Shown here: positions 4,561 to 48,949 of the stretch, piece after piece
Position numbering within the stretch: the stretch's first letter is position 1
Layout: every line of letters starts with the position of its first letter
NCBI GenBank assembly: GCA_016748015.1
Contig: JAAOMT010000470.1
Location: 87,655 to 151,654 of the forward strand
Length of the DNA stretch: 64,000 bases
Direction: 5' to 3'
Origin: Geosiphon pyriformis uo1
Lineage: Eukaryota > Fungi > Glomeromycota
Translations under genes and position numbers: made by a program
The notes under the pieces: generated by a model
What the model was told of the DNA's origin: nothing
Database searches by the model: none
Seen by the model: only the letters and a program-made list of their open reading frames with translations

Positions 4561-4569
4561 AATATTGTG

Positions 4570-7140: not shown

Positions 7141-7149
7141 AAGATACAA

Positions 7150-11465: not shown

Positions 11466-11484
11466 AGATGTGTATAAGAGACAG
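11466..11484 (+). other. Nextera/Tn5 mosaic end (library adapter artefact)
   Basis: Exact 19-mer AGATGTGTATAAGAGACAG. Confidence 0.95.
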
Positions 11485-11510
11485 ATATTAAGAGCTATAT
11501 TTTTATAGTA

Positions 11511-11825
11511 AAAAATCCAAGGTATTTATCTTTGCTGATAGTTGTTATTTATAGTTTTAAATAGATTGAATATTTAATAACTTTTTTTCATTAAGGTAAT
11601 AGTTTTACATTTGTTTTTTTTTACATTGGTTCTGAATTGATATCATAGTTAATATCACATTAACTACTTTTCATGAGTTAAATTTGAATCAAGAAATTTA
11701 TATTCTAAAATGCAAAAATGAGATTAAAGCAAAAAATATAATGCTACTAATAGTTTGAAAAGTATTTTTAATATAATTTCTTTTAAATAATCCGAATTCC
11801 AATTAGGGTCAATAAAAAAACAATT
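11511..11825. repeat. Apparently identical inverted copy of about 47535-47849 (BTB gene 3' flank)
   Basis: Reverse complement matches base for base as far as I can read; both copies abut gaps. Confidence 0.9.
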
Positions 11826-12521
11826 NNNNNNNNNNNNNNNNNNNNNNNNNNNNNNNNNNNNNNNNNNNNNNNNNNNNNNNNNNNNNNNNNNNNNNNNNNN
11901 NNNNNNNNNNNNNNNNNNNNNNNNNNNNNNNNNNNNNNNNNNNNNNNNNNNNNNNNNNNNNNNNNNNNNNNNNNNNNNNNNNNNNNNNNNNNNNNNNNNN
12001 NNNNNNNNNNNNNNNNNNNNNNNNNNNNNNNNNNNNNNNNNNNNNNNNNNNNNNNNNNNNNNNNNNNNNNNNNNNNNNNNNNNNNNNNNNNNNNNNNNNN
12101 NNNNNNNNNNNNNNNNNNNNNNNNNNNNNNNNNNNNNNNNNNNNNNNNNNNNNNNNNNNNNNNNNNNNNNNNNNNNNNNNNNNNNNNNNNNNNNNNNNNN
12201 NNNNNNNNNNNNNNNNNNNNNNNNNNNNNNNNNNNNNNNNNNNNNNNNNNNNNNNNNNNNNNNNNNNNNNNNNNNNNNNNNNNNNNNNNNNNNNNNNNNN
12301 NNNNNNNNNNNNNNNNNNNNNNNNNNNNNNNNNNNNNNNNNNNNNNNNNNNNNNNNNNNNNNNNNNNNNNNNNNNNNNNNNNNNNNNNNNNNNNNNNNNN
12401 NNNNNNNNNNNNNNNNNNNNNNNNNNNNNNNNNNNNNNNNNNNNNNNNNNNNNNNNNNNNNNNNNNNNNNNNNNNNNNNNNNNNNNNNNNNNNNNNNNNN
12501 NNNNNNNNNNNNNNNNNNNNN

Positions 12522-13401
12522 GATCTTCATATAAAGTTCCAGGTAAAATTCTCGCAAATGGTTTTACTTTGTGATAAAAGTCAACTGAAGATATGTTAAA
12601 GAAGCGGATTAAAGGTAGAAGTCTTTCAATGGATTCCTTAATGGTGTTAAATTTTTCATCTGTCCAGTTAAAAACGTTTTTCATCTGAATATTGTTATCC
12701 AATTTAGCAGCTCCCCATTCCACAATCTTTTCCCATATTTCAGATTCTTCTATATTTAGATCATCCCGCTTTAAAATTGAGGAAAGTGCATTTTCACTAA
12801 GGGAGGTAAAATCTTGCGAGTTGAAGACTATAGCTGGATTGTTAGCAGCTATTTCGGTGCAGAATTTTTGTAACTTTTTGAAAGAATCATGCATGAATGA
12901 AGTTTTCTGCAAAGTGGCGAAATTTTTTTCTAGCTCTTTTGCATGGTGTTTAATTAAATAGTCTTCAAGGGGATCAATGAGATTCTCTAGAATAAGCTCG
13001 TCAGCGGTAACAAGCAATTCTAAAATGGTAGATACTCCATGTTTATCAAGAGAGATTTCGCCGTTATAAATATATCTGTGCAGGAAAATAAAACATATGA
13101 ATTTATGTTTGTCAAAATACTTTAAAGCAAATAAACACCCTTACCTGAGAATTATTTTAAAAATTTTAGGTGAAATGTTAGGTTTATCAAAGATAATGGT
13201 ATTGTTTTCCCTTTTAACCCAATTACTAGAGAGTGCTACAGTAAAATACGGTGATCTTGCTGCTAAAATTTGCGAATGAGCAAGGAAAGTTCTGCTATTA
13301 GGCGCTTCTCCAACAACAATCTTAACATCAGAGAAATTCTGGCTATCTAGTAAATTCCCGAAATCTTTGGATAAAGCGTGAAAGTGTTGTTGGGGTGACA
13401 T
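12522..13401 (-). CDS. BTB/POZ-BACK(-TLDc) protein, copy A; 3' part lost in gap
   Basis: Exon 1 13401-13145, GT-AG intron 13144-13076, exon 2 runs into gap; FSDVKIVVGE, AHSQILAARSPYF, LLPLIRFFNISS; paralog of 45564-47059. Confidence 0.92.
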
Positions 13402-14449
13402 TAGTAAAATATATAAAAAGCTTTGAAATATTAATATTTCGATCTGTAGTGTTTAAGCAAAGGCATTTTCACAAAATCAAATCAGCGCTGAATTTTATAC
13501 TACATGTAAAATATGATCGACGGGTGATCTCATATAAGTTCTGCCATATTAACTTTCAAATTTTTTTTCATTTTTAAACAAAAATTTAATAATATTAAAA
13601 TATAATATAATAATCGAAATTTCAAAACAAATAAAACAAGATTAAACAAAAAATTGTAATAAAAATTTTATTTAAATCGGGTGTTCACATTTTGTAGATA
13701 TTATTATATTTTTGTTATTTTTATAACAACAATGGCCAATTAGTTTTTTCTATAATTTGGCAACTTACGAACAATTTAACAATATATATTGAGAGTTTGA
13801 GAACTTGCCACTAGTTTGGCTAAAATTTGTGTCATTGCTATTTTTATTGCCAAATTATAGAATTGAATAAGTTTCTAAATACAATTTAACAAAATTGACT
13901 TTTGATTTAATAAATAATTATGCATGTATAGCTTTCACAATTTGTTTTAATAAAATTTAATAAAAATTTTATAAAATAAAAATGTTATGCCATTTAAATT
14001 CACATCATGCTTTAAAACTTTTATTAAATTAAAAAATAAGTATCTATATATTATCAAAAAAAAGAAATTACTAATTATTCGAATAAAAATACATTTTAAT
14101 TGAAGAAAAAATTACATACATAAAAGATAAAAATAACACCTCAATTAATTTGAACCAAAGTAATGCTTAATTTTTACACGATAAAAATTCTATTTAACGA
14201 TTAATTTAATTTCTTAACTTTAAAGGAGTTTGATTTGATTTTGTGTTCTAAATACATTGCCAAACCCCAGAAAACGATTGAATTAAATTCATATAAGTAA
14301 ATTTTAGTTTGAATAATAATATTTTTTTATTAAGTCCTACTCTCAAATATATTATAAATACATGATGTATTTTATTTCATTAAAATTGAACCAAGAATTG
14401 ATAAGATTTTAAAATTGCTAATTTTATCAGTGATTACGGAAAGATCAAC

Positions 14450-17339: not shown

Positions 17340-19037
17340 TGGAAGCTAATTCTCTTGTTTCTTGTTATTTAACTAGTGACTATGTTGTTTGAATGTGGAA
17401 CCAAATCAAGTCGAGTAGCTAAATTAAAATTTTAATATTATTGACCTCATTACCAAGCCCGTTAAGGGAATAAATTTATAGAGAAATGTTTTATGTTAAA
17501 AAACGACTTGATCGAAAATAATTTTGTATACAATTAAGTATGAAAATGCTCATTTATTTTAAAAGTATCTGAAATATAAATTGTGGAATTTTCTCAATGA
17601 AAAAATTACAAGCACTATCCTAAAAGATTAAATCTTCACATTTTTTTTGTTATTTTCCATAAGTATGATGTCAACTTTAATGTCGACTAGAATTAATGTG
17701 AAAAATGACTGCAAAATTATTACGCTAAATTATTAATATTTAAATATCATTATTTAAAATAATAATAATTGCTGTAATATAACTATGAAAAGATATATAA
17801 AATATTTTGAGATCATTCTTTGTAATCATAGCAATTGTAATTAACTTGAATTTATTTTCTTCCAAGAATTAGCTAACTAATAATAATAATAATAGATAGC
17901 ATTTGATTTCATAAAAATTATATGCCAAAGATCAAAATACATTCACTCATTTTGCTAAATTTCTTTCAACTGGAATGATTAAAGCTAATTAATCTTCAAG
18001 TATCTCAAAAATTCACTCTTTCTTGATTAAAGCGCAAATAGTAGCTTAAATTATTTTAAGCAAATGAGTGAATGAATGAATCAACATATAATTAATCTTT
18101 AAAAATTAAAGTTCTCAGAAAGCCAAAAGTGAAAAAGATGTATCTGTTTTAAATTGCCAGATATTGCTACAGATTTCCCAATGGCTTCTTTATACTCTGA
18201 ATCATTTACAAATTATTGTCGAGGACAAAAAAATTTTTTATTCGGTTGATTTGAATATGCTTTCTATTACTGTTCTACTATAACGGCTTTTTTTATCCAA
18301 ATCCACAAGACTATTGTTTTTGGATGATGAGATTGTATTGGAATAAGTAATGTTTATTTCGTGCAGCCCCAATAGTATTATCATGTTATGATAAGCAGAA
18401 TTAAAATTTCGATAAAAAAGCATTTTCATATCCAGTGTCTGTTCAAATAAAAAATTAATAATTAACATAAAAATCTACCAAAAACAACATTCTATTAAAT
18501 TTTACTTTGTTTTGAGAGATGTAGTATATTTTTGAAATATATTGTAACATAGTTCTCCTCTAATGCAACAGCAAAGAAAGTATTATTTGATAAGATAATC
18601 TATAAAAAATTTGGTCACATTACTTTATATTTGTTATTTCCTTATTATCTGATCTCTTAGTTAAAGTCAATTTTCTACTATAAGGCGGTGAAAGTGTAAA
18701 ATTTGACTGATAAAATTCTGTTTTTAATATTGCTCCACTTTGGAGAAAATCATATTCCAAATTCTCTTTTCGTTTGCAATAAAGAATAATATTTAACCCA
18801 AGTCATTCGCTTGTTATAATTTTCAAATTATTTGCATCATATTGATCGAGTAGAAAATGAGAGCCAAAATGAGCTGTTTCTGGCTCCCAAAATGGGACAT
18901 TTACTCAATATATTGTCATGTTTGTACAAAAAAATTATTAACAATTTATCCACATTCAAAGCCTTCTTCAATTGTGGGAAATCCGAATTGCAATTTTGAT
19001 TTATTGAACTCTTACTAATTGAGATAAAAAAACCCAT
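17340..19037 (-). pseudogene. Deleted/frameshifted paralog of the 31.7-35.0 kb membrane-protein gene
   Basis: Colinear blocks: 18130-18480 with 33230-33660, 17780-17880 with 32500-32590, 17670-17735 with 32340-32410, 17340-17470 with 31650-31810; start MGFF vs MEFF. Confidence 0.8.
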
Positions 19038-20490: not shown

Positions 20491-21551
20491 TTCGGTCCTT
20501 ATATCTTTAATTTTTCCTTTTTATCTGATAAAACTAGATAAAAAATGTTATTTTCAACGAGAAATATTTATTTATTCTATTTCAGTAACCGGGAAAACTA
20601 ATTAAAATTAATTATATTTTCACTCGATTAAAGGTAATATCATTGCAAATTCTTCGCTCATTATTATTTTGTTGCCATTTTCAATACAAAATAAAGCTGC
20701 TTTTATATTTAAATTTAAATCATTTCTCATACTATTTAACAACTCCGAAAAAGATAATTGCTTGAACAAATTTATGAAATGACAGGGTTCTAAGATAGAA
20801 AAAATTATAGAAATATAGAAGAGCTCAAGATGTTTATATAACTAGCTCTAATTATCTTTTCATGGAATAGGAATATTATTTTAAATAAAAAATTAGCTTA
20901 ATATAATTATGATGTTTTAAAATTTTATAAAGTAATATAAAATTAGTTAGAGAAAAGAAATATATATACAAGAAGCTTCTTTGGATTAATGAAATAGATG
21001 ATAATAAAATACAAATAGAGGAGATTTTAATTTATATTCTATTTCAATAAAAATATTAAGCTGACACATAGTTCTATAAAGTTTAAATTAAAGAGATTTC
21101 ACTGGGTCTTTCTTTACAGTTTTCATCTATTGAATTACCTATCTTACAATATAAACAATTAATTTTACAAAAATCAAATAATATAATTTAAAAACAGAAA
21201 TTCTGACATATTAAATTCTGCTAAAAATATCTTTAAAACTAACCAAGCCAAAAGCTCACCTTTGCCGTCTTTTTTCAGTGTAAAAGAGAGAAAAATTGAC
21301 GTTTAAAGATAATTCCGGACGATCTGTACCCGTTTAAGCAATCTAAAGAGGTATGTGGTTTCGGGGCGTTTCAGATTTCTTAAAGGTTTAACCGAGTTTA
21401 AATTAATATTGTTACAATAGTAAATAAATACAAATTTAAAAATAGAATTAGCGTTTTTTTAAATTTTTTATAAAAGGTACTTAATTGCAAACTTTTAACT
21501 TAAAAGTTCAATTACATTCAACTAATATAATATTCAAAGAAATTTTTTATA

Positions 21552-23525
21552 ATGTTTAAAAAGTTGTCCACGATTTTTATAAAGATATGGATGATTTCGT
21601 CGATTGTAAGTTTGACAGCCGAGAGTGTTGATGTATCATATCAACGATGGTTTGTCTTATTTTTTTTAAATCAATTTTTCCCAAGATTAATCAATTTAAT
21701 ATGACTTGACTTTATTTTAAACCTCTAAAGTTGCCATTCTGCTACGTTAATTGATAAAACGTAAGTTTAACTTAGTTTATTTCACAAAAATGTGGAACTC
21801 TTATTTGATTCTATTCCCTAAGTTTTTTTTCTCTTTCACTCTCTAGTCTTTATTTATACGGTGGAAAAACTGATTTCGGAAAGAAATTAGTAGACAATAC
21901 AACAGATAGTAACGACCTCTGGACCTTAGATATAACACAATCATTCGATGTTTTCTCACCACCGTGGAAAAAAGTCGAGTCTTCAAATCTTGCACCAAAA
22001 GTAGCTCGACATTCAGCAACATATGGTGGAAAAAATAATGAAATTTTAGTTATATTTGGAGGTGAAACAGGGACTAGCCCAATGCCTGAAAATTCTTTAT
22101 TTTATTTCAATACCACTTCATCAGAATGGTCAAATCCAGATACGACTATAATTGATAAATCAGACTCACCATCTGTGCGTCGTCTTGCACATGTATCTAC
22201 AACAAGCATAAATAACTCAATGATATATTTTTTTGGTGGTCAACGTTATAATAATTATCAGTATGCAGAATTGTATCAAGAAATTGCTCAACTCGATACA
22301 ATTAAAAATACCTGGTCTTTTGCTTATACTTCTAAATCGTCTAATTTGCTCTATGGAAGAATAGGACATTCTGCAACCCTATTAAGAGATGGAAAAATTT
22401 ATGTTATTGGAGGTTATAACAACGGTGACTATAAATTAATCCCTATGGAGAATGTTGATATTTTTGATACTAAGAATTTATTGTGGTCGAGTCAGGTACT
22501 GGATATGAAGAAATTTCATGAATATACATAAAGTTTTCATTTTCTCAAATTTGTTTTTAACAATTTTAGAAGGTTGATGGAGATATCCCACTACCTCGTA
22601 GATTTCATGCAGCTGTTGCAAGTAAGCAGTTTAAAAACCTGATTCCCTTATTTTTTGACATTTCAGTCATTTAATTATAGAAAACTTTGAAAATCTTTTT
22701 TATAGATTCGAATAGCACGTCTATAATAATATTTGGTGGTGCAGATGTTTATTTATTAAACTGCTACAATGATCTTTATACTCTAGACACATTAACTTCA
22801 CCAATGAAATGGTCTTTTCAATCAATGAAAGGAAAAATACCTGGTGGAAGATCTGATTTCAGTATGACATTGGTGGGTACTAATATCATTCTTTTGCATG
22901 GTAAGTAAAAATAAATTAATACTTTGTTTTTTGGAAATTTATTTTTTCCAATTCTAATTATGCTTCTTTTTCATGAATATCTTTTTAAAAAAAAAAGGAT
23001 ATGTGGTAAGCATCTAAATTTTCCACTGTTTTCCAAATAATTAGATATTTAATATGATTTTTTTTACCTAAATTTAAACTTAAGCCTAATCCTACCACAG
23101 CACAATATTTTTTCGTCTTGGATACGACAACTTGGGTCTGGGAAACTTCATATACACCAAAAAACCTAGAATTGACATGGCCACCATTTAAATCTTTGCT
23201 CACGCCAAACTCTACGTCAAATTCTACATCAAACTCTACGTCTCAAAACGCAAATTCATCAAAAAATATTCCTCCTTCATCATCAACAGCAAAAAATAAA
23301 GTTATAATAATAGCGTTGTCAATCGCAGCAGTAGTGATAATAATTTTTACATTAATTGGGATATTTTATTTCTTTATAATTCGAAAACCCCATCGTTCCA
23401 CCCTACCTACAAACCTCGATCATTCCTATGTTGATCACAATTCGGCACATCAACCACTTTCGGATCGCACACAGACGGGCAGGGACCGAGTATCTGCACA
23501 TGAAATTCGAAATAATAATAAATAG
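21552..23525 (+). CDS. Kelch-repeat (galactose-oxidase-like beta-propeller) type-I membrane protein, copy A, about 490 aa
   Basis: Seven exons joined in frame via GT-AG: 21552-21649, 21731-21760, 21847-22495, 22570-22621, 22706-22900, 22998-23005, 23085-23525; signal-like N-terminus; repeated HSAT/YxxGG/W kelch motifs; S/T/N-rich stalk; TM helix; short tail. Confidence 0.9.
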
Positions 23526-24599
23526 CACTTTTGAGGAATAGATTCTGTATTCAGAAGATAGAATTTCATCACTAATATAGAAATACATTCACACGATGAT
23601 GAATAATATTCTTGTTCAATATTAGTCTCCACATAATTTACTTATCCTAATAAGTAGCTTAAAATTACAGGTAGCCATGCAGTTAGTACCAATATGGCAT
23701 TAAAAATTTTAGAGAATGTTAAAAGTTTTTTGCCTTAATAAAATTAACTAGTATTTTTGAAGTAAAAAAGAACAAGTTTATATAAAAGATTATTTTAATT
23801 AATAACCTCACTAAACTGCTTAATAATTATACATGATAAAATTTTAATGATCTGTAATTTTCATTTTAACACACTATTAGCCCCTGATAAATGTAATATC
23901 AATATTTCAAAATTCTATAATCGTAAAAGATAAAAAGCTCATTGATACATAAAAATCATTAGTATTTTATTTATACACATCAGTTTTTTACGAAAAATTT
24001 AATCACCTACATCATTTATATATCTGTAAGGATAGATATGGATTCAAGATAAATTTTATTTAGAATATAAAGTTTATCATATAATACTGAAATCTCGAGA
24101 TTTGATTGAATATTATAGAAAATCACATTCTAATATTCAACACTTTTTTGGTCATTCTTTTGAACACTTAATGAATAAAAATAATTGATGTAACTAAAAA
24201 ATGATAATATGACTGAAAAATTAAAGCAAGTAAAAAATATTTTGATAATTTTCTTAAAAACATGATTAACAATTGCAGATAGTGATATTTTTTTAAAAAG
24301 TGTCAATTTTTAGAAAAAAAGGCTTTTAGTTGGTTTGTGTATTTTTTATAGAATTGACTATTAAATTTGCACAATTGATAAAATTTTTACCAGACTTAAA
24401 ATATTTAATAATGTTATAGCTTATTTAATCCATCAAATAATAAAGTTTAACTTGAAAAGGTTAAAAATAAAATATTTGACCAATTTTGATTATTGGAATA
24501 ATAACAAGTGCTAATGGTAAATTTTGACGTAGAAAAATAATAATTTAATCATATATTACAATTTTATTACATAATTACAGCTGCAAAATTTGTTGATTT

Positions 24600-25031
24600 A
24601 AAATATTTTTATTATTAAATTTAAAATAATAATTTGTTTGAAAAGAACAAATTAAATTGTAAATAAATTCTGCCATGTATAATAATAATTAATTATGCAT
24701 CTAAATATTATCTGAAATTTAGAAACTATAATAAAAAAAATTTTTTTAAGTAATAAATTTGAATTGATTATAATTATTTTTAAAGTTGGTTGGTTTATTA
24801 AGTTTAATTAATTATTTAAAAATATTAAAAACTAAATTTTTAACTAGCAATTATATTTTATTTTTTTTAATAGTTTTATATCTATAAAGTAATAAAAAAA
24901 ACTTGCAATTTCAACTAATTTCAATTAATTATTGTTATTTTTGTTAACTTAATATTCAACATATTTTAAAAGAACATCTGATTTTTTGTTTTATAATAAG
25001 TTTTACAATTTATTATAAACTTAAGGCTTTA

Positions 25032-25064
<33 letters not shown>

Positions 25065-28850: not shown

Positions 28851-29649
28851 TTTATTATTTTTTACCTATAACTTTCCTTTTTGATAAAATGCGGGAATTA
28901 TCACAGGGATAAACATGTTTTATGGCTTCGGTAATATGCAAAGCCCAGTGCATTATTTACTCTGCTTTATGCTGCCGATATATTCGAAGTATGGCAACTT
29001 TAATTTTTTAGTGCCCCAATATCTAAAATAGTTGAAATCTTTGGGGTAGCTCTATCAATCTTTTAATTGAAGATATTCCGCGATTAGTAATTCAGGTTTG
29101 ATTGCAAATATATTGATTTTTAAGTTTTATGCTTTATCAAATCAAATATTTTATATGTACTTATTTCTTCTAACTAAGTTTATTTGTCATGAATAGACCC
29201 TCGCCTACGATATTATTCCTACAATCAGTCTCGCTATAGTTTTAATAATCCATTTAATTTCATTTTATAGCGTTTGATTTAGGTCCGTATTTAAAGTATA
29301 AATGTACATTGCTACCGGTAAAAACCATGGGAAATGAGTGAAATTTATTAAATTCAAATATATATTTATTTGTTGTTAGAATTTATTATAAATTTAGTAA
29401 TATAATAATCTTAATTAATAACAAATACATGTATTTGATTGGCTATGTAAATAATATTCTATCTCATAAAACCATCAACCAGGGCTTGGATACGCAATTG
29501 CTTAATTTATATTTGTCGAAAGACTTTGTATGAAAATTTACTTAAATAATGAAATATATTTTTGCGCCTGAAAAACTCAAATTAATGCCATTTTTCCTTA
29601 TTTATACATTTCAATTATAAATATTTTATTTTCTTTAAGGCTTTTTGTA

Positions 29650-34600: not shown

Positions 34601-34994
34601 TTTGAATTAGTGTTCCATTCCACGAAAATATTTTTCCCAATTTTCCCTTGCTACATTCACATTCATATTCCACCAAAAGATAATCAGCGTTAAGAATGTA
34701 AATATGAGTTATTTTACTCGTGTCTCCATAATTTGTTTCATTATTTTGAATAAGACTGCCGTTAAATGTAAGCTGGAAGTATGCTCCATAAGGTTGTTTA
34801 TCACATTTTATTATGATTTTTTCATCTTGGATGAACGTTTGTATGTCGACAACCGAATTAAGTCTCTTTGGAACAATTATGAATGCGCTTTGATTTAAAT
34901 GTAAATTACTTTTAATAGTTGAAATAACAAAACTCAAGGATATCAAAATAATTAATTGATAATAATTGAAATAAACGGTTGAGAAAAACTCCAT
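31662..34994 (-). CDS. Large-ectodomain multipass membrane protein of a glomeromycete-expanded family; two apparent +1 frameshifts (recent pseudogene or homopolymer errors)
   Basis: About 10 GT-AG exons traced (34994-34600, 34511-34395, 34324-33680, 33609-33229, 33118-33089, then five more to TAA at 31662); N-terminal hydrophobic leader; Ig-like NISVYQ..LRQT..YFIVVDNNFVKD; GLLRLNQEGT; several TM helices with IEDIGQ; frame breaks near 33835 and 32305. Confidence 0.75.
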
Positions 34995-35244
34995 AATTTT
35001 TTAAAAGTTATTATGTTTGCAGAATAATTTTTAAATGGGTTGGCTCTTTTGTTTTCCTAATTTTTCAATTTTTTATATCTTTTATTATCGAAATTATTGG
35101 AATTTAAATCCAGTTAAGATTATATCCATCTCATACTAACTAGTTTGCAAAAAAAAAAGATTACTAGAAGGATCTAAAAATACTAATTCTTTGATATTGC
35201 CTTTTAAAGTCGACCAATAGAGTTTATGCAAATTAGCCTAATCA

Positions 35245-35850
35245 CAAGCACAAAATTAACTTGGATGTTACTATTATAATGGGAAAGGTGTTATCGAGAA
35301 TTTCGAAGAAGCAGTCGGATGGTATACCAAAGCAGTAGAAAAGGTAAATACAGAAGCACAATATCAACTTGGATATTGCCATTATAATGGAGAAGGTATT
35401 ACCGAGAATTTTGAAGAAGCGGCTAGATGGTAGCCAAAGTAGCAGAACAGAGAAATGCAGAGGCACAACATCAACTTGTATATTGCTATTATTTTGGGTA
35501 TGGTGTTAATGAGAATCTTGAAGAAGCAGTGAGATGGTATACCAAAGCAGCAGAGCAGAAAAACATAGACGCCTAATGTATACTTGGGATTCTGTATTTC
35601 AGGGGCATGGTGTTACCAAAAATTTTGAGAAAGGAATTGAATCGAAGAAATGTGAAGGTGCAATATGAACTTGGGTCTTGCTATTATAATGAGGAAGGAG
35701 TGAAACAGAATAATGAAATAGCATTTGAATAGATAACTAAAGCAGCCAAGCAAGAAATGAACTTGCCCAATATGCACTTGGATGTTGCTATTATAATGGG
35801 TATTGTGTTGCCGAAAAATCTTGAGAAAGCAATTGAATGGAATCAAATAT
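35245..35850 (+). pseudogene. Sel1-repeat pseudogene fragment (about 5 repeats)
   Basis: 36-aa units AQYQLGYCHYNGEGITENFEEAARW*, AQHQLVYCYYFGYGVNENLEEAVRWYTKAAEQ with stops; inverted homolog of 29700-29990. Confidence 0.88.
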
Positions 35851-37399
35851 TGAAATAAAGCTTGTTAAAATTTTAATAGTCTTCAAATTATTTTGAATAT
35901 ATATTGAAGGAAACGAAAAATAAAAAGAAATTAAGGAATTTCGACAATAGTTTAAGAACAAATATCTGCAATTGGAATAACATATTGCTTCACGTATCAT
36001 GAAAAAAACATTTTTAATCACTTTAAAATATATTTATTCTCAAACAATTCAGTGCATATTAAATTTATTCCACGTACTCTTTCAATTCATAAACGATTCT
36101 AATCATAATACAATTCGAAGATACCTATTTGCTAGCAGTAACTTTCTTTTAAATAAGCATCTTAAATGAAATATAAGCACAATTTGAAATAATCTATCCT
36201 AAAAAACATTTTGAGTATGGACTACCTTTTTCTTCTCCCCCCACCTCCTCCATAAATTTATCAGCGCTTGAGAAAAATATTTCATCATCATTATGGAAGA
36301 AGTTCAAAGTCTAAAAATTTACCAATTTTAAAATTAAGCAAAAGGATCGTATATTTCTAGATGGGGAGCTAGATCCTTATTACTTAATATCTTATGTATC
36401 GCTGGGATTATATTGAATTTGAGTATTAGTTTTTTATACATTATGTGAAGTTATAATTTAAAAAGCACCTGTGCATAATTAATAGTTGAAAACTTGTAAA
36501 AATGCCGATTATCTTCATACTAAATGCTATTTTTTGAATCCTTCTGACCCACATATGTTACTCATACCAGTTACAATTTATTCATATTTCAGAATTATAT
36601 ATATTATTAAATGTATTTAATTTTCTAGAATTGCTGTCAATTATTAATAGATTTTATTTATTTTGAATACTAAGTTTAATGAAAAGATCAAAGGAAAATA
36701 ATACCGTTAACCATATTGATCTGAGAAATTATAACCTATTTTGGACTTGGGTTAATTTGTGTAATTTTTTGGTGGCTTGTAATATTAATTTATCATAAAT
36801 ACATAAATATATATATTTTCTCTAATAATTATGTAAAAAATTACAGTTTAATCCCTTTAGATAAATAAATATTTCGATAAAAAACGCTTTAGAATTGATA
36901 ATCTCACTTAATATTGAATCATTTTTATATCAAGATCTTGAATTTTACAAATATATAATTATACAAAACTTGGTGATAACAATATAAAATCAATTCGAAT
37001 ACAACTTCAAGTTACCAATATTATGAGTTATTTATTCACAAATTAAGTATTCTTTCATATCAAATAAATTTTAATCAATTATAATATTGAATTTTTTAGT
37101 TTTTTTAATAATGTATTTTTAATATTATTAGAATATTTTCCAATTATAATATTATTATTTTACTTTTTTTTGTATAAAAAAACATAAATTAATATTGAAT
37201 ATATTGTTAAAATTACATTAAGTTTTTAATTAATAAAAAACCAAATATTTTTAAGATAAAACTTTTTAATTGACATATATTTGCTAATTTTCAATATATT
37301 TTATAAACGTTATAACTTTATTTCTAATGCATAAACCGAAAAAATTGTCATAAAAATTTTCAAGTTTCTAGAAATTTTTTCAATTTTTTTTTTGAAATT

Positions 37400-38950
37400 A
37401 AGTAATTAATTTAATAAACAACTATTAAATAAATAATTTATCACAACTTTTTTAGCATAACACTTTAATAAAAGTTTTATTTAAACCAAAATAGATAGTT
37501 TTTCAAATTAAAGCCAGGTGTTTTAAACTTTAATACTTGTAACAACACCAAAATTTATGAATTTTTTACCAAATATATTTTTTTTTTAAATACTAATTTT
37601 AACAATAACAATATTAAAAACTTTCTGAAACTTAAAAATAATAATAGTGTATTTTTTTTAATAATTTAACTTAGATAATTAAAAAACAATAATATGTTTA
37701 AATAGTATTTCTATAATTAAATTAATAATCTTATAGACTGTATAGTTAAAAAAAAGTTTACCAATATAGTCTTAAAATTATTTTTTCTTCTTAATAATAA
37801 TTAATAATTAACAGCATAGACAATAAGAGCAAAGTTTTTAAAATAAACAATAGCATAGTGCTGCAAACTAGTAAACTTTAATTAAGCAACAACAATAATC
37901 TTGCCCAATACTTCAAAAGCATCTTTAATGTTATTAAAAATGTGTTAAATAAAATATTAATTAAAAAATATTTTTAATATAAGCTACTTTAATTTTAATA
38001 AAAGCATTGAATACTAAACAAAAAACTATTTACTTAAAGAATTTCTAATAACTAGTAATAATTTTTTAGTGAGTAGATACAATATTAGAGACTATAACTA
38101 TTTTAGAAAAAAAAAAGATGTTTGAATTTTATAACTTTGGTAATTGATAAATGTATTTTTAAAACAAAAAATAATTTGCTAAAAATGACTGTATTAAACA
38201 ATAGAGTCAAATTTTAATCCATCTTTATCTTAATAAACAAAATATGGTTGTTAATATTCAAATTAAAAAAAATTGTTGCTTACAGCTAAATTAGAACTTA
38301 TTGCCATAATTGGTGTTAATAAGATAAAACTGTTAAAAACATCAAAAGTGGATAAAAAACCAAAGCGCTATTTTTAAAAAAGAAAAACCAGATTTAAATA
38401 AATATATAATAGACTTAAAATTCTCAAAAAACGCAGAACTGGTGAATTATGTAATTCTAAGAGAAATTTTTTTTTTTTGGTTTTATCTTTTATAAAACAT
38501 ATAATGGTAAACCTACTTTAGTTTTTTTAGGCAATGTAATTAAAATCTCAAGTTCAATCACTAATCTTTAACCAATTTTGACTTTGTTTACACTATTTAT
38601 TTCTCAATTATATTTTTACTGATGTCACAATTAGACGGTTTGCTTTCAGAAAATGTTCAAGCATGTTTGTTGTTACCATATTCTTTAAAACTTTTAACAA
38701 GTTTGAGTATCCTATCGGTTATATTCATGATATCTTGTGTTTTGCTATTTTATCTTTTTGTTGTCATTTCGAATTGTTTTGCTGCTAAAAAAATTCTGAG
38801 CAAAAGGCTTTTATTTTTGAATTATGTGAGATAATTGGGATAATAATTTTAAATAATTAACTAAAGAGAATAATTAATAAACTAGCAACTTTGCTATAAG
38901 CTGCATTTTTAAGTGGTTTTTTATTTTTTGATGTTTAAGAGATCAAGCAT
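37400..38950 (-). mobile_element. Hypermutated LINE ORF1 relic (second family)
   Basis: Eroded RRM-like stretch (LKFTSLQHYAIVYF) and CCHC-knuckle-like remnant (CCYKY*SLKHLALI), matching the ORF1 layout at 53.6-54.1 kb. Confidence 0.6.
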
Positions 38951-40418
38951 TTTTTTAATGGTACTTATAAAATTATAACATAATAATTTTTAAACTAATT
39001 TTTTTTTAAAAACTCTTATTTTTTGATCTCTTAATAGTGTTTATATATTAATTATTTTTACATGTCAAATTTTACCACTATTTGTTAGTATTCTAAAAAA
39101 ACCAATAATGAAATTGCTCAAAAACTTTATTTCTATTTATTCAAACAACTTTAACATTTGATAAATTTACTATTTGTGCAAAAATAATTAACCAATTTTA
39201 TAAACAATATTTAAACAAACCAAAAACTCCATTTTTATAAAGTAAGCACTTAAAAAAAATAATGTCGCTATTTAAAATTTTTAATCATTTTTTAAAAAAC
39301 AATAATCAAAATTTTTTTACGTGCTTTAGTTTCTCTATTATTTTCAGTCTCGTTATCACATTATTATTTTAGTCACATTGTTATTTTTTATTCATATTAT
39401 TTTTTCAGTTATCTCAAATTATTTGATTACATTATTAATTATTTAGTTGATTTTTCATTTTATTAATCATTTTCTAATCATATTATTATTTAACAATTCA
39501 TTTGTTAAATATTTTTGATATATATAAAATCAAATTTTTATCTTTTTCCTGAGAATATTTTTTTAGGGGATATTGAATTTATAGATTTTTAGCTTTAATT
39601 CTAATTCATTTATTTACCAGTCAGAATTGTATTAAAATAAAAATAAGGATTATTTGAAAATTTGTACTTTCTTACTATTATTTATTATTATATTATCTAA
39701 TCGATAGAAAAACTTTAAAATTAAGATACTTTTTTTAATCTTTGAAGAACAATTTTGTAATCAATAAGTGTTCAAAATAAAGGTCGCATTTTTGACTATC
39801 AGGATATGATTCTCTATAATATTTAATTAAATTTCGACATTCCAGTATTACAATAGTAAGCTTTAATATGATAGATATTTCACAGATAAACTTTATCTTA
39901 AATCCGCATCAGATACATAATAAATATATAAAGGATCCATGTCATCGCATTTTTGTTGAGAAATCAAATATATGTATAATATTTAACTAATAAATATTAT
40001 TTATCAATATGCTTTCCATAATATTTTATTTCTTTTGGGATTCCATTTATCATTGGTTCATAGTGTGTTAAAATGGCAATTACCGATTTACAAATTTTTA
40101 TTATATACAGTTATTAATCAGTTTAATTATATTATTAAAATATAATTACTGTAATTAATAACTAGTTTTAAGGATTAAAGTAATCTTTTATATAATGCTA
40201 TTCTAATTAACTATTTATTGGGACTAACTACATGGCTACCAGTAATTTCAAACTACTTAATAGGATAAGAGAAACAAAGATATTTAAATTCTAACAAAAT
40301 TTTGCAAATTCAGTTTATTCATTGTGTGAATATATATCTATATTAGTGATGAAATTTTATATTTGAAATTTAGAATCTATCATTATTTATGATTATTTCA
40401 AATTTCATGTGCAAATTC

Positions 40419-41822
40419 TCAGTCCCTCCCTATCCGTATACTAGCTGAAAGTGGTTCTTGTGCCGAACTGTGATCGAGATAGGATTTACCGAGGTTTGTA
40501 GGGGGGCTGTAACGAAGGGGTTTTCGAATTTTGAAGAAGTACAGTAACCCACTTAGTGCAAAAATTATTATCCCTCCTGCGACTGATAATCCTATTACTA
40601 AAGCTTTGTTTGTTGTTTTTGTTGTTGAATGAGGAATACCTATTGATGAATTTGAAATTAATGTGGAATTTACGTTTTGAAACGTAGAGTTTGATTTAGA
40701 GTTTGACGTAGAGTTTGGCGTGAGTAAAGATTTAAATGGTGGCCATGTCAATTCTAGGTTTTTTGGTGTATATGAAGTTTCCCAAACCCAAGTTGTCGTA
40801 TCCAAGACGTAAAAATATTGTGCTGTGGTAGGATTAGGCTTAAGTTTAAATTTAGGTAATCAAATCATATTAAATATCTAATTATTTGGAAAATAACCGA
40901 AAAACAGTGGAAAATTTAGATGCTTACCACATATCCTTTTTTTTTAAAAAAGATATTCATGAAAAAGAAGCATAATTAGAATTGGAAAAAATAAATTTCC
41001 AAAAAACAAAGTATTAATTTATTTTTACTTACCATGCAAAAGAATGATATTAGTACCCACTAATGTCATACTGAAATCAGATCTTCCACCAGGTATTTTT
41101 CCTTTCATTGATTGAAAAGACCATTTCATTGGTGAAGTTAATGTGTCTAGAGTATAAAGATCATTGTAGCAGTTTAATAAATAAACATCTGCACCACCAA
41201 ATATTATTATAGACGTGCTATTCGAATCTATAAAAAAGATTTTCAAAGTTTTCTATAATTAAATGACTGAAATGTCAAAAAATAAGGGAATCAGGTTTTT
41301 AAACTGCTTACTTGCAACAGCTGCATGAAATCTACGAGGTAGTGGGATATCTCCATCAACCTTCTAAAATTGTTAAAAACAAATTTGAGAANNNNNNNNN
41401 NNNNNNNNNNNGTGGTGAGAAAACATCGAATGATTGTGTTATATCTAAGGTCCAGAGGTCGTTACTATCTGTTGTATTGTCTACTAATTTCTTTCCGAAA
41501 TCAGTTTTTCCACCGTATAAATAAAGACTAGAGAGTGAAAGAGAAAAAAAACTTAGGGAATAGAATCAAATAAGAGTTCCACATTTTTGTGAAATAAACT
41601 AAGTTAAACTTACGTTTTATCAATTAACGTAGCAGAATGGCAACTTTAGAGGTTTAAAATAAAGTCAAGTCATATTAAATTGATTAATCTTGGGAAAAAT
41701 GATTTAAAAAAAAAGAAGACAAACCATCGTTGATATGATACATCAACACTCTCGGCTGTCAAACTTAGAATCGACGAAATCATCCATATCTTTACAAAAA
41801 TCATGGACAACTTTTTAAACAT
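40419..41822 (-). CDS. Kelch-repeat type-I membrane protein, copy B; most of exon 3 lies in the gap
   Basis: Same exon structure as copy A; exon 5 peptide identical; divergent stalk, TM and tail; about 570 bp missing at the 20-N gap. Confidence 0.88.
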
Positions 41823-42099
41823 TATAAAAAATTTCTTTGAATATCATATAAGTTAAGTGTAATTGGTGATAGTTTCAATTTTAAGCTAAAAGTGTGAATT
41901 AAATACCTTTTATAAAAAAATGCTTTTAAATTGATATTAGTAATAATAATAATTAATATAGACTTGAAGAAATCTGATGTGCTCTTCCAGATTGTTTAAA
42001 CGGGTAGAGATCGTCCGGAATTAAAATGTCCATCTGTTTTTTAATTTAAAAATTAAATAAATCAAAACGATAGAAAGTTCCGAAAACGCACAATCTCAG

Positions 42100-43150
42100 T
42101 TACATTACTTAAATAGGTAGAGATCGTCTATAACTCGCCGTAAAAATTTAAATGCATAATCCAGTTATAAGGTTGCAGATGGTCTTAATGGACTTCCAAA
42201 AATTATTTTTAAATGTCAAAACATGAAATATAAAATCCTTTATTAGTGATAATCTTAATAATGGGTTTAATGTCAGGTTTATTTTGAATTTCATGAGTCA
42301 GTAACACTGATGTAATTAAAACATTATTTAGAAACTGTTTTATAAAAAAATCCGCCAAATATTAATCTCAAGCAAAAAAAAAGACTTCCAGTATATATCA
42401 CATTTTGGTAACCAAAAACAACTGATTTGGCCTTATTTTCTGCTTTATCAAATGACGCAATATGACCTCTTGGGAGCTTTTCTATTTGCTGCTCAAATGA
42501 ATGGTGGTGTGTTGTATCTTTTGTAGGACAAATCTAAAATTGTAAAAGATTAACAAATTCAAATATTATTACTTCGAATTAAATATAACACAGCGTATAA
42601 TAGTGCTTTATGGTAGATCATTTAACAGAACTCTATATAGAGGAAGAAAATGCACTTGTTGTGAATTTTAATAATCAAAATGGAATCTAAAATGATGTAT
42701 TAAATGTCTCGAATTGAAATTGAAATTGAAATTAGAATGCATATTATGGCGCTGATTTTACTACCTTACAAGCCAATACTTTTTAGCTGCTACATTAAAA
42801 AAAAAAGATTATAGTTTCTATCAAGATTTTTTAATGAAAGGTTATTAAGATCGAACTGAATAAAGGAACCGCTATTTGGGTAAAAATTTGTAGCTTTAAT
42901 TAATTCTTTGAAAATTCATTTTTAATACTACTTATCCCCTTATTATAAAGAAGCAATTTTGATCAGAGCGTGAAATAGAAATTACTTATTTCGAAATAAT
43001 TCCATTCCCCAATAATAATATTTCCATCTATCATCTCGATTCGGATAAGAAAACTGCGATAGTAGAAATTATATTTAAAAATAATATTTTATTGTCGCTC
43101 AATACAATCTTATAAAAGATTAACAGCATAATGAAATCATCAAGAAAATA
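42100..43150 (+). pseudogene. Relic of the multipass membrane gene family, divergent from kelch B
   Basis: YITFW*PKTT, LQANTF, TYPLII, EITYF..NNNISIYH, FIVAQYNLIKD correspond to motifs at 33.3-34.2 kb. Confidence 0.65.
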
Positions 43151-44329
43151 TTTGACAATTTAAACTAGATAAATGTGCATATTTTTGAGTTTTATAGTTT
43201 AATTATTCAATTGAGATCAAGAACTTTTAATATTTTTATCAGCCTTTGGTTCTGTGTTTAAGCACTTAAAAATATTAAAAAACTGGTTTAGGGAGAGGTT
43301 TAAAAGATTTTTTTAATAAAAAATAAAAGCAGAAAAGAAAACCAATTTTTTTAAAGAAGATTTTAGATGTTAAGGTTTGGAAAAAAGTTTTGAAGACTTT
43401 GAACCATGAGGCTTTGAGGAATAATAATAATATGTTGAGATTTAAAAATGTGTTTACAAAAATATTTAATATGATATTAAATCAAATTTTTTTTTGATAA
43501 TAATATCAAATAAACATATTTGTATTATATTTAAAAACATTAAAAACTTTCTAGAAAATAATATATATTATAAAACTTTGAAAATAACAATTTTATTTTT
43601 GTTAAAATATTCCTTTCTTTTCCAATTGTATTATTTAAACACAGATGTATAAATTTCATGTAATGTGAAAATCGGTCTTTCAAATAGGTGTGTAAAAGAT
43701 TACGACAAAAATATTGTATTTAAAAAGCTTTTTAGTGTTAAGGCGGGATGAAACTAGAAGGAACCAGGTAAGGCGGAAATAAAACAAATGAGCTCATCTA
43801 AGCTTCTATAAATTTTTAAAAAAAGAGAAATCTATGTGAATGTTCCAAATCATAATTTATATGCATTTAGCAAAAGACGTGTCAACACAGCAATATTAAA
43901 TAATTCTGATAATAAAAATATAAAAATTTTAATTATCAAACTATTTTAACTTACAGAATTGGGCTTTCACTTATAGGTAATAGGGATGAATTCTAAATCT
44001 GTAGCAGATTTAAAAAAAACTTTCCAGATTATCAAAAAATCTAAATTATTTTATTTTTATTATTAAAATTGAAATAATTTTTATTATTAATTATCAAAAA
44101 TATATCTCATATCAAATCTTTTACAATAAACTTTCTAGCATAACTAACCATCACACTTTAAAAATTTTTAAAGTGTACTAAAAATCTGTTTGCTCTTATA
44201 AATATTCTTTTACCTAAATTTTTTTCTCAATTTTTGTGCCAAGAATTTTTATCATTTATATAATAGTGGCCGACGTATTTAATTGAGAAAGTTTTAGGTT
44301 GCCTCAAATTAATATATTTATCAGATATT

Positions 44330-44600
44330 GAAAATTTGCAAAAAAAATAGTTGATATAGTATAGCTGTAAAAAAAAGGTAAATGCCTTAGGAATTATATT
44401 TTTTTCTATAAAATATAGAGCTATTAATATGAGTGCAATAATAACAATCGCAATTGTGTTCTCAAAAATTACATGAAAGAATCAATAGGTAAAGAAATAA
44501 GTATTATATGATGCAAATTGATACAAGTCAAATATTTCCATGGGTTCACTTAATGGGCCTGCATCTTTTACAAAAGTATTATCAACAATAACAGCCACAA
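44330..44600 (-). pseudogene. Further fragment of the multipass membrane gene family
   Basis: 44357-44455 matches 32461-32558 at DNA level; VIVDNTFVKD at about 44560-44595. Confidence 0.65.
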
Positions 44601-45563
44601 TACAATCTTTATCTTTTTGACTAAATTTGCTTGCTTTTTAATACTGCTTCCACAATGACATTTCTTAAAATGCTCTAGTTTTTTAGAAAAAATGATATAA
44701 AATATAACACAACTTTTTATATAAAAATTTAAAAGTTAAATCCCCAATTTACCAAAAAATATTGCCGCAATGTAAAATAACAATTATCTATCAACTAGAG
44801 TTAATTTTTAATATAGATATATAAAATAAAAATTAATAGTAATATATTATGAAAATAATTTTATGCAAAAATTATCTACGTTTATTCCCAACCGATACTG
44901 TATATGCTTTTTTTTCTTTCTTATTTTATTTACATCATTATCATTTATACGTTCCATGCCATAGAATCCGTTCAAAATAATCCATTTGACTATATCTAAG
45001 TCTTTAAATTAGATTCTTAATCATTTGTTGATTACTTAAAAAATCTTTATTATTCGTTGTCAGTTACTATATTTTTATTTCATATCTGCTGTTAAAACTA
45101 GATTGAAGATATATTCAGCAACGAAAAATATTTTTTTTATACTATTTAATTCCTTCCCTAATCAGGAAACTAATTAAAAAATAATTTATATTCCTATTTG
45201 CTTAGAGGTTCTTCCTTAGTGGTGAGAGGGAGAAATCATTGCAAATCATCACTCATTGTCTTTTTGCTATTTTTCATATAAATAAATAAGTTTTTCTACA
45301 TCACTTTTCAAATTATATGCTCCTATAATTAGTTGGGTGATGATTTAAATTCTAATCCGATCGAAAAAGCAATTTTAACGAAAATAATTAAGAATTCCAT
45401 TTCTGATTTCGATTAGCCTGAAAAAAGTTCCTTGTTCCCCTACATGCACGACAGAAATCTTGTTAATAATAACAAATCACCTGCCGATCACATATTTGTA
45501 TAAAAGTCTCTAAAAACTGCATATTGAAGTATTAATATTTCATAGCTTTTTTATATCTCACCA

Positions 45564-47059
45564 ATGGGACCCCAACAATACTTTCACGCTTTATCCAATG
45601 ATTTCGGGAATCTATTTGACAGTCAAAAGTTTTCTGATGTTAGAATTATAGTTGGCGAAGCGCCTAATATTAGAACTTTTCAAGCTCATTCACAAATTTT
45701 AGCAGCAAGATCACCCTATTTTGCTGTAGCACTCTCTAGTAATTGGATTAAAAGGGAAAATAATACCATTATCTTCTCCAAACCAAATATTTTCCCTAAT
45801 ATTTTTGAGATAATTCTCAGGTAAGGATTTTCTTGCTTCAAAAGTATTTTGATCAACAAAAATTTATGTGCTTTGTTTTCCTGCATAGATATATTTATAA
45901 TGGCGAGATTTCTCTTGATAAACATGAAGTAACTACCATTTTAGAATTACTTGTCATCGCTGACGAGCTTATTTTGGAAAACTTTATTGAACTCCTTGAA
46001 GAATATTTGATTGAACACCATGCAAAAGAGTTAGAAGAAAATTTCGCCACTTTACAAAAAACTTCATTCATGCATGATTCTTTCAAAAATTTACAAAATT
46101 TCTGCACCGAAATAGCTGCTAACAATCCAGCTATATTCTTCAACTCGCAAGATTTTACCTCCCTTAGTGAAAATGCTCTTTTCTCAATTTTAACCCGGGA
46201 TGACCTAAACATAGAAGAATCTGAAATATGGGAAAAGATTGTGGAATGGGGAGTTGCTAAATTGAATAACAATATTCAGATGAAAAAAGTTTTTGACTGG
46301 ACAGATGAAAACTTTAACGCCTTTAAGGAATCCATTGAAAGCCTTTTACCTTTAATCCGCTTCTTTAACATATCTTCAGTTGACTTTTATCACAAAGTAA
46401 AACCATTTGCGAGAATTTTACCTGGAACTTTATATGAAGATCTTTTACATCATTATCTCGTACCGGGTAGTCATCAAAAGTCTGTAGATGCTCAACCATT
46501 ACGATCAAATGTTGATTCAAAGCTTCTTCAATCGCATAATATAAAACAACTTGATCATTGGATTGAAGGCAAAGACGAAAATACTCCTTTCGAAGATCAA
46601 CTTGGAAATGATTTCCAATTGTTACTTCGAGGCAGTCGAGACGGATTCACTCCAACCGATTTTCATCGATTATGTGATAATAAAGGAGCAACAGTAAGCG
46701 TAATAAAAGTGAAAGGGACTGGTCAGGTAATTGGCGGCTATAACCCACAGTCTTGGCACTCTCGGGGAGAACTAATAGATGGAAAAAGAAGTTTTATTTT
46801 TTCCCTTGGAGATGGCAAAGCTGAAAATGCTAAACTTAGCAAATTTATTGGAGGATATGGACCTTATGGTGAGCCAAATCATGGACCCTATTTTGGAATT
46901 AGTAATTTGTTTTTTTATGGCAATGACTTGAAAAGTAGTCTAGTGGGCTATTGTGAAAAGACAACAGATTATGAGCTTGCTATAATGCCTCGATCAGAAA
47001 ATCAAAGGGTGAATTTCTCTTTGGAGGAATATGAAGTTTTTCAAATTTTAAAAAGATAA
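45564..47059 (+). CDS. BTB/POZ-BACK-TLDc protein, copy B, about 475 aa, intact
   Basis: Exons 45564-45820 and 45889-47059; BTB and BACK motifs; TLDc motifs FQLLLRGSRDGF, FHRLCDNKGAT, IGGYNP, SFIFSL, GPYFG, EEYEVFQI. Confidence 0.95.
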
Positions 47060-48949
47060 ATTCGCTTTTATTTAATTTGATTATACATAATCTGAAGACT
47101 CTGTTACCTATTTAAAAATTTTTCACTGGGAATATATTCTATAGCCGACTATTTTAAGCCCCACAATAGAGTTAAAAGAATAACATTTTCTATTTTAAAC
47201 ATCAAAAAATTATAAGTTGTTTGACAAAAAGTGATTTTTGAAGTTGATGTTTTTATCACAGGCTAAAACTATAAAACGCTCTTTAGCAGAATAGCATTAA
47301 AAATATAACTTTTAAATATTTGTATTTCCTCGCTAATTAAAAATATAAATTTTTGGATGGTGTTTTTAATATTTACTGTGCGATAATATAAAAAATACTT
47401 TGAATATAGAAACTTTGAGAGATTCGAAAAGAGTAAAAGTTTTCAAACAAAATATAAAAATAATAACTCTTTAATAAAACAGATTTTTATTAAAAATTCG
47501 ATGATTTTCTTCTTATATATTTAAAAAATTGTAAAGAATTGTTTTTTTATTGACCCTAATTGGAATTCGGATTATTTAAAAGAAATTATATTAAAAATAC
47601 TTTTCAAACTATTAGTAGCATTATATTTTTTGCTTTAATCTCATTTTTGCATTTTAGAATATAAATTTCTTGATTCAAATTTAACTCATGAAAAGTAGTT
47701 AATGTGATATTAACTATGATATCAATTCAGAACCAATGTAAAAAAAAACAAATGTAAAACTATTACCTTAATGAAAAAAAGTTATTAAATATTCAATCTA
47801 TTTAAAACTATAAATAACAACTATCAGCAAAGATAAATACCTTGGATTTNNNNNNNNNNNNNNNNNNNNNNNNNNNNNNNNNNNNNNNNNNNNNNNNNNN
47901 NNNNNNNNNNNNNNNNNNNNNNNNNNNNNNNNNNNNNNNNNNNNNNNNNNNNNNNNNNNNNNNNNNNNNNNNNNNNNNNNNNNNNNNNNNNNNNNNNNNN
48001 NNNNNNNNNNNNNNNNNNNNNNNNNNNNNNNNNNNNNNNNNNNNNNNNNNNNNNNNNNNNNNNNNNNNNNNNNNNNNNNNNNNNNNNNNNNNNNNNNNNN
48101 NNNNNNNNNNNNNNNNNNNNNNNNNNNNNNNNNNNNNNNNNNNNNNNNNNNNAGCCTTTTAATAGAAAATAAACAAATAAATCTTTTTACTTGAATGTTT
48201 GTTTACTCGTTGTCATGATTCTAAAAGATTCAAACAAAATAAATAAATAAATGAATAATCTTTTAATAAATTTCCCAACAATTAAAAAAAGTTAAAAAAA
48301 TGCTTTAAATTGGCAAATATTTTTAATATTGTACATCCATCACAAATTATTATCGAGGATAATTTTTATCTGGTACTAGATAAAAAATATGAAACAAGCA
48401 TTGAAGAAAACTGAATATGAGTATGACAACTGCATAGAAGAGTTTATAAAACTTTAATATATTGGAGTTTCAAATTTTTTTAATAGGCAAACAATATTTT
48501 ACTTGGGTTTTAATCTTTCTTCTAATCTCTTTAAAAATTCTAAACCTTTTGCTTAATTATCTTCAATGTCTGCTTTACAATTTTTCTTGAGCTTGAGTCT
48601 ACATAATAGACCATTAACTCAAAAAAAAATACATGAATATGTAATTGAGAGAAAAATCTTAATCCAGTAACATCATAAATTTGCCAGCAGAAAAATTGAT
48701 TGAAGTTACAACTACAACAAAAAGATCATTCCAATTAAAGCTGAGTGGTTTTTACTAAAAAATACAAATTTAATCGAAAAAGCTATTAATTAGGAGATCC
48801 AAAATAAAGAGCAACCAGAAGATAAAAGAAATAAATTATTAAAAGAACTGTTATAGAGGATGCCAATAATAAACAGCTTGCTAAAAATTCACAAAAAGAT
48901 TGTGAAGCTTTAAAAATTTTGAACAATAAAGATGAATTTAATGAATACA

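Follow-up and report, generated by a model that had tools for sequence, protein, structure and literature searches.

A probable degenerate inverted duplication of a kelch/membrane/BTB gene module, with proposed patchy ectopic gene conversion, in the fungus Geosiphon pyriformis

Introduction

The palindromes of the mammalian Y and X chromosomes (P1-P8) consist of two inverted arms that carry multi-copy genes and flank a short unique spacer, and the evidence from them is compatible with non-reciprocal exchange between the arms. An arrangement that is alike in these respects lies in a 64,000-nucleotide stretch of the genome of Geosiphon pyriformis uo1 (assembly GCA_016748015.1, contig JAAOMT010000470.1, positions 87,655 to 151,654; hereafter the window, C732:87655-151654 in our scaffold numbering), where kelch-repeat, BTB-BACK-TLDc, Sel1 and membrane-protein genes and their relics occur in opposite orientations on the two sides of a short spacer. 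We argue here that this locus probably, though with considerable room for doubt, represents an inverted segmental duplication, now degenerate, of a recurrent kelch/membrane/BTB module, on which patchy ectopic gene conversion has been superimposed. The original prediction, made from the sequence alone, was of an ancient inverted duplication whose arms can still pair, analogous to the Y palindromes. The arms of Y palindromes are more than 99.9% identical over their full length, whereas here about 75% of the arms is unalignable and the rest is 67-95% identical except for two tracts of 0.3-1.3 kb, one of which, unlike the situation in Y palindromes, is common to a copy on another scaffold. Identity above 99% along a whole arm was not found in the window.

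The second relevant system is ectopic (interlocus) gene conversion, or concerted evolution, which the locus resembles in its mosaic identity, its sharply bounded tracts and its changing closest partner; likewise, nearby copies tend to be sisters (scaffolds C404, C384 and C361). The difference is that the tracts described here coincide with assembly gaps and are known from the assembly alone.

The third is the gene content of related fungi. BTB/POZ, Sel1 and kelch genes constitute high-copy expanded families in Glomeromycotina, e.g., in Rhizophagus irregularis, and genes of expanded families are occasionally found in tandemly repeated arrays (PMC8647823). The window is similar to R. irregularis in domain families, copy number, clustering and repeat-rich surroundings, but the arrays there are tandem while the modules here are mirrored. 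In the papers that were searched, we did not find mirrored multi-gene modules or gene-conversion palindromes described for Glomeromycotina.

Sequence and Methods

The window was compared with the genome assembly (128.3 Mb in 792 scaffolds), and mirrored blocks within it were identified by blastn, tblastx and repeat finding. Protein searches were run exon by exon, with spliced gene models not joined, and a maximum-likelihood tree of BTB genes was built for eight copies only. The G+C content of the window is locally 25%. Three runs of N (11826-12521, 41392-41411 and 47850-48152) divide it into four contigs, referred to below as A (up to 11825), B (12522-41391), C (41412-47849) and D (from 48153); open reading frames (ORFs) spanning the N runs are artefacts. 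The gaps were judged by the colinearity of their flanks with assembled paralogs. According to PMC9453076, the G. pyriformis genome was obtained by k-mer-binning assembly, a method which that paper used on 125-bp Illumina reads of P. occultum, and the assembly of this genome is most likely a short-read one. An exact-protein look-up for an independent assembly returned no record.

The Mirrored Arrangement

The left arm extends from 11.5 to 29.2 kb (about 17.7 kb) and the right arm from 31.8 to 47.85 kb (about 16.0 kb), the two lying inverted on either side of a spacer (29.2-31.8 kb, about 2.6 kb) with a centre near 30.5 kb. The four pairs that were claimed to be mirrored (BTB-BACK-TLDc, membrane relic, kelch and Sel1) were confirmed, each of them inverted, and their midpoints fall between 29.5 and 32.7 kb, matching the earlier values. 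Altogether, five or six markers follow the mirrored order, and all of them are inverted. The order within the module is X (the 3' flank of the BTB gene), BTB-BACK-TLDc gene, membrane-family relic, kelch gene with a transmembrane (TM) segment and membrane-family gene. The predicted nesting of the four claimed pairs holds, and X and the last exon of the membrane gene are mirrored as well; the Sel1 relics, however, are interleaved with this last, innermost pair. Summed over all blocks, about 23-25% of each arm can be aligned to the other one, at 67-95% identity; the remaining 75% or so cannot.

The inner part of the mirror is made of the following genes and relics:

21464-24385, plus strand: left kelch gene (kelch_L), containing kelch repeats and a transmembrane segment, together with about 0.86 kb of non-coding DNA on its 3' side
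39163-41919, minus strand: right kelch gene (kelch_R), interrupted by the 20-N gap at 41392-41411 and lacking about 579 nt of the kelch core
31803-35050, minus strand: intact membrane-family gene with a signal peptide, an ectodomain rich in N-glycosylation sites and a C-terminal transmembrane exon
28896-29220, plus strand: relic last exon, with its flank, of the lost left-arm membrane gene

Pfam searches of the inner genes detect kelch repeats and also a TM-like segment. The 5' parts of the two kelch copies (21464-21962 versus 41919-41412) are 94.9% identical and include 234 nt at 100%, their 3' parts (22542-24181 versus 41391-39754) are 80.4% identical with the initial 491 nt at 100%, and a stretch of their flanks (24171-24385 versus 39395-39163) is 70% identical, all three matches being inverted. 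The non-coding inverted homology that had been noticed inward of the kelch genes is real: it continues for about 0.86 kb beyond the stop codon at 23525 (23526-24385 versus 40380-39163, 70-80%). Except for the 5' end of the right kelch gene, both kelch copies are located inside the single contig B, as are both Sel1 relics, and the inner mirror is therefore independent of scaffolding.

The intact membrane-family gene is the downstream same-strand partner of kelch_R. It had been taken for a single central gene serving as the mirror axis, which turned out to be wrong, since the segment 28896-29220 mirrors its last exon (28896-29220 versus 32147-31803, inverted, 67-72%, E-values of 1e-10 to 1e-14). 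This fifth mirrored pair implies that the gene belongs to the right arm and that its left-arm partner has been almost entirely lost. At more than 10 loci, last exons of membrane genes match this left segment. The membrane family, with at least 40 scored loci in the genome, has no Pfam hit, and the Atlas was uninformative about it. The possibility that the AT-rich DNA at 24.4-28.9 kb is a left membrane gene decayed by C-to-T changes was rejected, because its collapsed-base alignment score is 46 as compared to 49 +/- 7 for shuffles. The AT-rich filler at 24000-28000 and 37000-38000 has a G+C content of 13-17% per 1-kb bin and no ORF of 60 or more amino acids, and contains fragments of high-copy dispersed repeats (26.9-27.6 kb and 37.4-38.1 kb).

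The outer part of the mirror contains the membrane relics, the BTB genes, their flanks and one gap:

17797-18983, minus strand: left-arm membrane relic, 73-77% identical in direct orientation to 33154-34234 and 76-77% to genes on C716, C675 and C708
42373-44300, plus strand: right-arm membrane relic, within 2.15 kb that are 85% identical to C733:180347-182529
11513-11825, plus strand: X_L, which is non-coding, flanks the left BTB gene on its 3' side and forms the final 313 nt of contig A
47537-47849, minus strand: X_R, the last 313 nt of contig C, adjoining the gap at 47850-48152
11826-12521, no strand: left assembly gap, which should contain the TLDc half and the 3' flank of the left BTB gene
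12522-13455, minus strand: BTB_L, the 5' part (BTB-BACK) of the left gene, with a Pfam BACK match
45511-47536, plus strand: BTB_R, an apparently intact BTB-BACK-TLDc gene with its 3' flank (Pfam BTB, BACK and TLDc)

The membrane relics form the weakest of the mirrored pairs. Both are recognisable as family members in alignments with bases collapsed to purines and pyrimidines: the left relic scores 271, and the stretch at 42.3-44.4 kb has a local score of 88 (shuffles, 45 +/- 6; antisense strand, 40). The latter stretch is also 67% identical to the membrane gene on C708. In BTB_R, the BTB exon occupies 45564-45824 and the ORF containing BACK and TLDc occupies 45833-47059; the segments shared with BTB_L (12522-13455 versus 46442-45511) are inverted and 88.9% identical, with identity climbing from 80% to 99% on approach to the left gap. 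Beyond this gap, X_L is the reverse complement of X_R with 100% identity over 313 nt. At more than 10 other loci, a piece resembling positions 30-154 of X lies beside the 3' part of a membrane-family gene, and copies of this piece in the window lie at 11542-11666, 32338-32427 and 47701-47794. Part of a membrane-family gene thus seems to be contained in the 3' flank of the BTB gene.

The last pair is located close to the centre:

29735-29996, minus strand: left Sel1 relic, in the 2.6-kb spacer, with WYTKAAE motifs
35242-35850, plus strand: right Sel1 relic, with internal repeats

The strands of these relics, judged by the WYTKAAE motifs, are as claimed. The pair (29735-29996 versus 35522-35260) is 83% identical, the next best copy being 81% identical (C568), and a Sel1 probe finds 21 candidate loci in the genome.

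The interpretation of the locus as an old inverted duplication is borne out by the mirrored markers, by the homology of non-coding flanks and by a further segment, described below, whose orientation on another scaffold is the one the mirror predicts. An old age of the duplication is indicated by the non-coding DNA, which is 70-80% identical, by the failure of about three quarters of either arm to align and by repeat insertions that differ between the arms, as the original prediction had it: dispersed repeats are found at 14.5-16.4, 19.6-20.5 and 26.9-27.6 kb on the left and at 37.4-38.1 kb on the right. The concern, raised together with the prediction, that the arms might be allelic haplotypes can be dismissed, since identity outside the tracts is 67-95%. 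Decay of one arm by directional mutation similar to repeat-induced point mutation (RIP) was also considered and rejected, the substitution spectrum between the arms being symmetric.

Could independent members of very large families have come to lie in this order by chance? The families are indeed large (more than 200 candidate copies for BTB, in addition to the membrane and Sel1 loci counted above), and when thousands of windows are read, an occasional mirrored pattern is to be expected post hoc. However, by our own arithmetic, five near-mirrored units that are all inverted have a probability of about 1e-3 under random arrangement, and chance accounts neither for the non-coding homology beside the kelch genes nor for the module-level colinearity with scaffolds C733 and C514 described in the next section. 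We consider a chance arrangement very improbable.

Copies of the Module Elsewhere in the Genome

Colinearity with C733:176601-190354, at 72-90% identity, extends over 38598-47313 in the right arm. Within this region lie 2.15 kb of non-coding or relic DNA that match at 85% and have no counterpart in the left arm; BTB_R is 89% identical to C733:188593-190354. The closest relative of the right arm is thus the C733 copy, which is much nearer to it than the left arm is. Scaffold C733 also contains a segment of the left arm, in the orientation that the mirror predicts:

13746-14383, no strand: segment S, 78-79% identical to C733:182952-184427 and 86% identical to a C514 copy

Taken together, the presence of segment S and the colinearity with the right arm imply that the left arm, the right arm and the C733 copy are three descendants of one module. 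Another copy of the kelch gene is located outside the palindrome:

9332-10652, minus strand: third kelch copy, a dead relic, with its upstream flank

This relic is 82% identical in inverted orientation to 21457-22329 and 81% identical in direct orientation to 41412-42506. Together with X and BTB_L (9332-13455), it is colinear with C696:29275-34199, the order being kelch (minus), flank, X (plus), BTB (minus), so that the BTB-X unit is inverted relative to kelch in comparison with the right arm and C733. It follows that the genome contains two isomers of the kelch-BTB module.

Parts of the module recur on many scaffolds. A kelch-TM gene followed by a membrane-family gene on the same strand forms a two-gene cassette at C716 (331.0-341.7 kb), C362 (12.2-16.7 and 58.1-60.3 kb), C675 (353.5-357.0 kb) and C708 (642-646.7 kb), and on C716 two such cassettes lie tail to tail, which is the architecture of the inner window. 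A palindrome at C514:58-89 kb has arms that are colinear with the outer flanks of both arms in the window. In the region C514:57001-92000, positions 1230-12649 mirror positions 31496-19758, with arms of at least 8.7 kb at 93% identity, and further inverted blocks lie between several gaps. The C514 palindrome is like the window in having the outer module (flank, X, BTB and relic) as head-to-head inverted copies, but, unlike in the window, its arms are almost fully alignable and have no kelch genes; their identity and alignability indicate that it is much younger or better homogenised. Pieces resembling 13960-14178, 31917-32279 and 42505-43170 of the window are present at its centre. Colinearity of the left arm with C675:469-477 kb was considered as well and rejected, because the orientations disagree.

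Inverted BTB-BACK-TLDc pairs are also found at C384, C404, C361 and C514. In these and in the window the two copies are 20-35 kb apart and head-to-head, the 5' ends pointing inward in all five cases. We rejected the explanation that the BTB genes are the terminal inverted repeats of a giant mobile element, since the interiors of the other four pairs are unrelated both mutually and to the window; they contain kinase, aminotransferase, Sel1, aspartyl protease and alcohol dehydrogenase genes. The mirrored order in the window is real but fairly ordinary for this repeat-rich genome.

These comparisons bear on the idea of a single ancient 36-kb palindrome in which the arms pair and correct each other by arm-to-arm conversion, as in the mammalian Y. 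The mirrored order and orientation in all families are what this idea would predict. So are the two 100% tracts between the arms, of which X is specific to the arms (the next best copy in the genome, on C514, is 93% identical), and the rise of BTB identity toward the X tract; moreover, other inverted BTB pairs of the genome come out as sisters in the tree (C404, 98%; C384; C361, 92%). However, only about a quarter of each arm can be aligned, and mirror partners, which were expected to be each other's closest paralogs, are not so for BTB: 13 other copies in the genome outscore BTB_R as matches to the 934-nt segment of BTB_L, the mirror partner being 14th of 40, and the tree joins the left copy to the C404 pair (support 82/94) rather than to the right copy. 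The BTB family is clearly reticulate. The likeness to a Y palindrome thus breaks down over the unalignable arms, the distant BTB partners and the proximity of the right arm to C733. The claim that the arms still pair fares no better, because the identity of the kelch core is shared three ways with C733 and all the 100% tracts are located at gaps. We regard a self-correcting palindrome of this kind as improbable.

Tracts of Identity and Assembly Gaps

All three gaps are located in near-identical tracts, presumably because a short-read assembler cannot resolve them. The flanks of the left gap correspond to right-arm positions 47537 and 46442, so that about 1094 nt are lacking (about 1110 nt by comparison with C514), while 696 N are written; the flanks of the 20-N gap correspond to positions 22542 and 21962 of the left kelch gene, which accounts for the missing 579 nt; and the flanks of the right gap (47850-48152) are colinear with both C514 arms, which predict about 415-426 nt where 303 N are written. 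Judged by this colinearity, the order and orientation of the flanks are consistent at all three gaps, and the written gap lengths are unreliable.

The C733 copy of the kelch gene is 99-100% identical to kelch_L around a 628-N gap of its own that lies in the same place. In a three-way alignment, the tract identical between the left and right copies extends over about 21704-23032 and that identical between the left copy and C733 over about 21900-23246; the boundaries are thus unlike, and downstream of the tracts the closest partner switches between successive 100-nt windows. The hallmarks of ectopic conversion, namely bounded identical tracts within diverged alignments and a changing closest partner, are therefore present in the kelch and BTB genes. 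With the kelch core equally identical in the left, right and C733 copies, any conversion there would have taken place between dispersed loci and not from arm to arm; the X tract remains the arm-specific one, and it adjoins a gap, like the others.

The position of the tracts lends itself to another explanation, according to which collapsed or mis-extended repeats gave rise to the 100% tracts and perhaps also to the position assigned to contig C, the true copies being about 90% identical without any recent exchange. The tracts flank three gaps out of three, the gap in the C733 kelch copy is at the same place, the kelch core that is lacking on the right has a single high-identity counterpart in the assembled genome, and the assembly is most likely of the short-read type (PMC9453076), in which de Bruijn bubble-popping could inflate identities to 100%. 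Yet, identity falls gradually away from the gaps, and the left-right and left-C733 tracts have different boundaries. Both kelch copies and the Sel1 pair belong to one contig (12522-41391), and the joins across the gaps are colinear with the independent paralogs on C514 and C733. Furthermore, an identical tract is also found in gap-free sequence: the inverted BTB pair on C384 (210.4-213.0 versus 243.8-246.4 kb, about 32 kb apart) contains 900 nt at 100% with flanks at 81-96%, all within 47 kb without N. This tract is the best gap-free sign of gene conversion in this analysis. An assembly artefact is unlikely in our opinion, although it is the most serious of the alternatives. The evidence suggests patchy ectopic gene conversion in these families, with tracts that would be biological rather than collapsed. 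Nevertheless, assembly gaps in this genome coincide with identical paralogs, and claims of 100% identity need read-level support.

The window contains other repeats as well. Tandem arrays are located at its end (63606-64000, period of about 75 nt, copies 91-99% alike) and at 48913-49196 (period of about 72 nt), and the region 5000-6900 has dense overlapping direct and inverted self-matches at 64-75% and looks like a degenerate, internally repetitive element.

Conclusions

We reconstruct the order of events from the mirrored homology, the third copy of the module, the mosaic identity and the positions of the gaps, all of which are directly observed. Within a cluster of expanded families, two mirrored copies of the module would have come to lie tail to tail around the 2.6-kb spacer, and the left membrane gene would then have been lost except for its last exon. 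The module would additionally have been copied to scaffold C733, to whose copy the right arm is now most closely related. Non-reciprocal exchange among near and dispersed paralogs may have produced tracts of near-identity of about 1.3-1.5 kb in the kelch core (left, right and C733 copies) and in the BTB pair (3' half and flank).

Several points weigh against a degenerate inverted duplication overlaid by ectopic conversion. The mirror is not clean at its centre, where the Sel1 relics and the innermost pair of membrane exons interleave, and no direct DNA similarity between the left and right membrane relics was found by blastn or tblastx within the window. With the C733 copy present in the genome, a second arm made by local copying would be indistinguishable from one that arrived from elsewhere. 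Finally, every 100% tract in the window (313 nt in X, 234 and 491 nt in kelch) adjoins a gap, and the ends of contigs A and C overlap exactly, in reverse complement, over X, so that collapse or mis-extension is possible.

The families discussed here travel as a linked module, in which a kelch gene is followed by a membrane gene and BTB-BACK-TLDc lies alongside, and a functional connection between them may exist. A bolder proposal, which we consider quite doubtful, is that inverted BTB pairs are active recombination substrates in a fungus without observed sex, exchanging tracts and possibly flipping the segment that they bracket. If this were true, flipping and exchange would constitute a mitotic way to homogenise or diversify candidate recognition genes (BTB-TLDc, kelch-TM and surface glycoproteins). 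If the tracts of identity are real, they reflect recent non-reciprocal recombination between copies located 18-36 kb apart and on another scaffold, and would bear on how the BTB, kelch and Sel1 repertoire is maintained or reshuffled in an early-diverging, putatively asexual fungal lineage.

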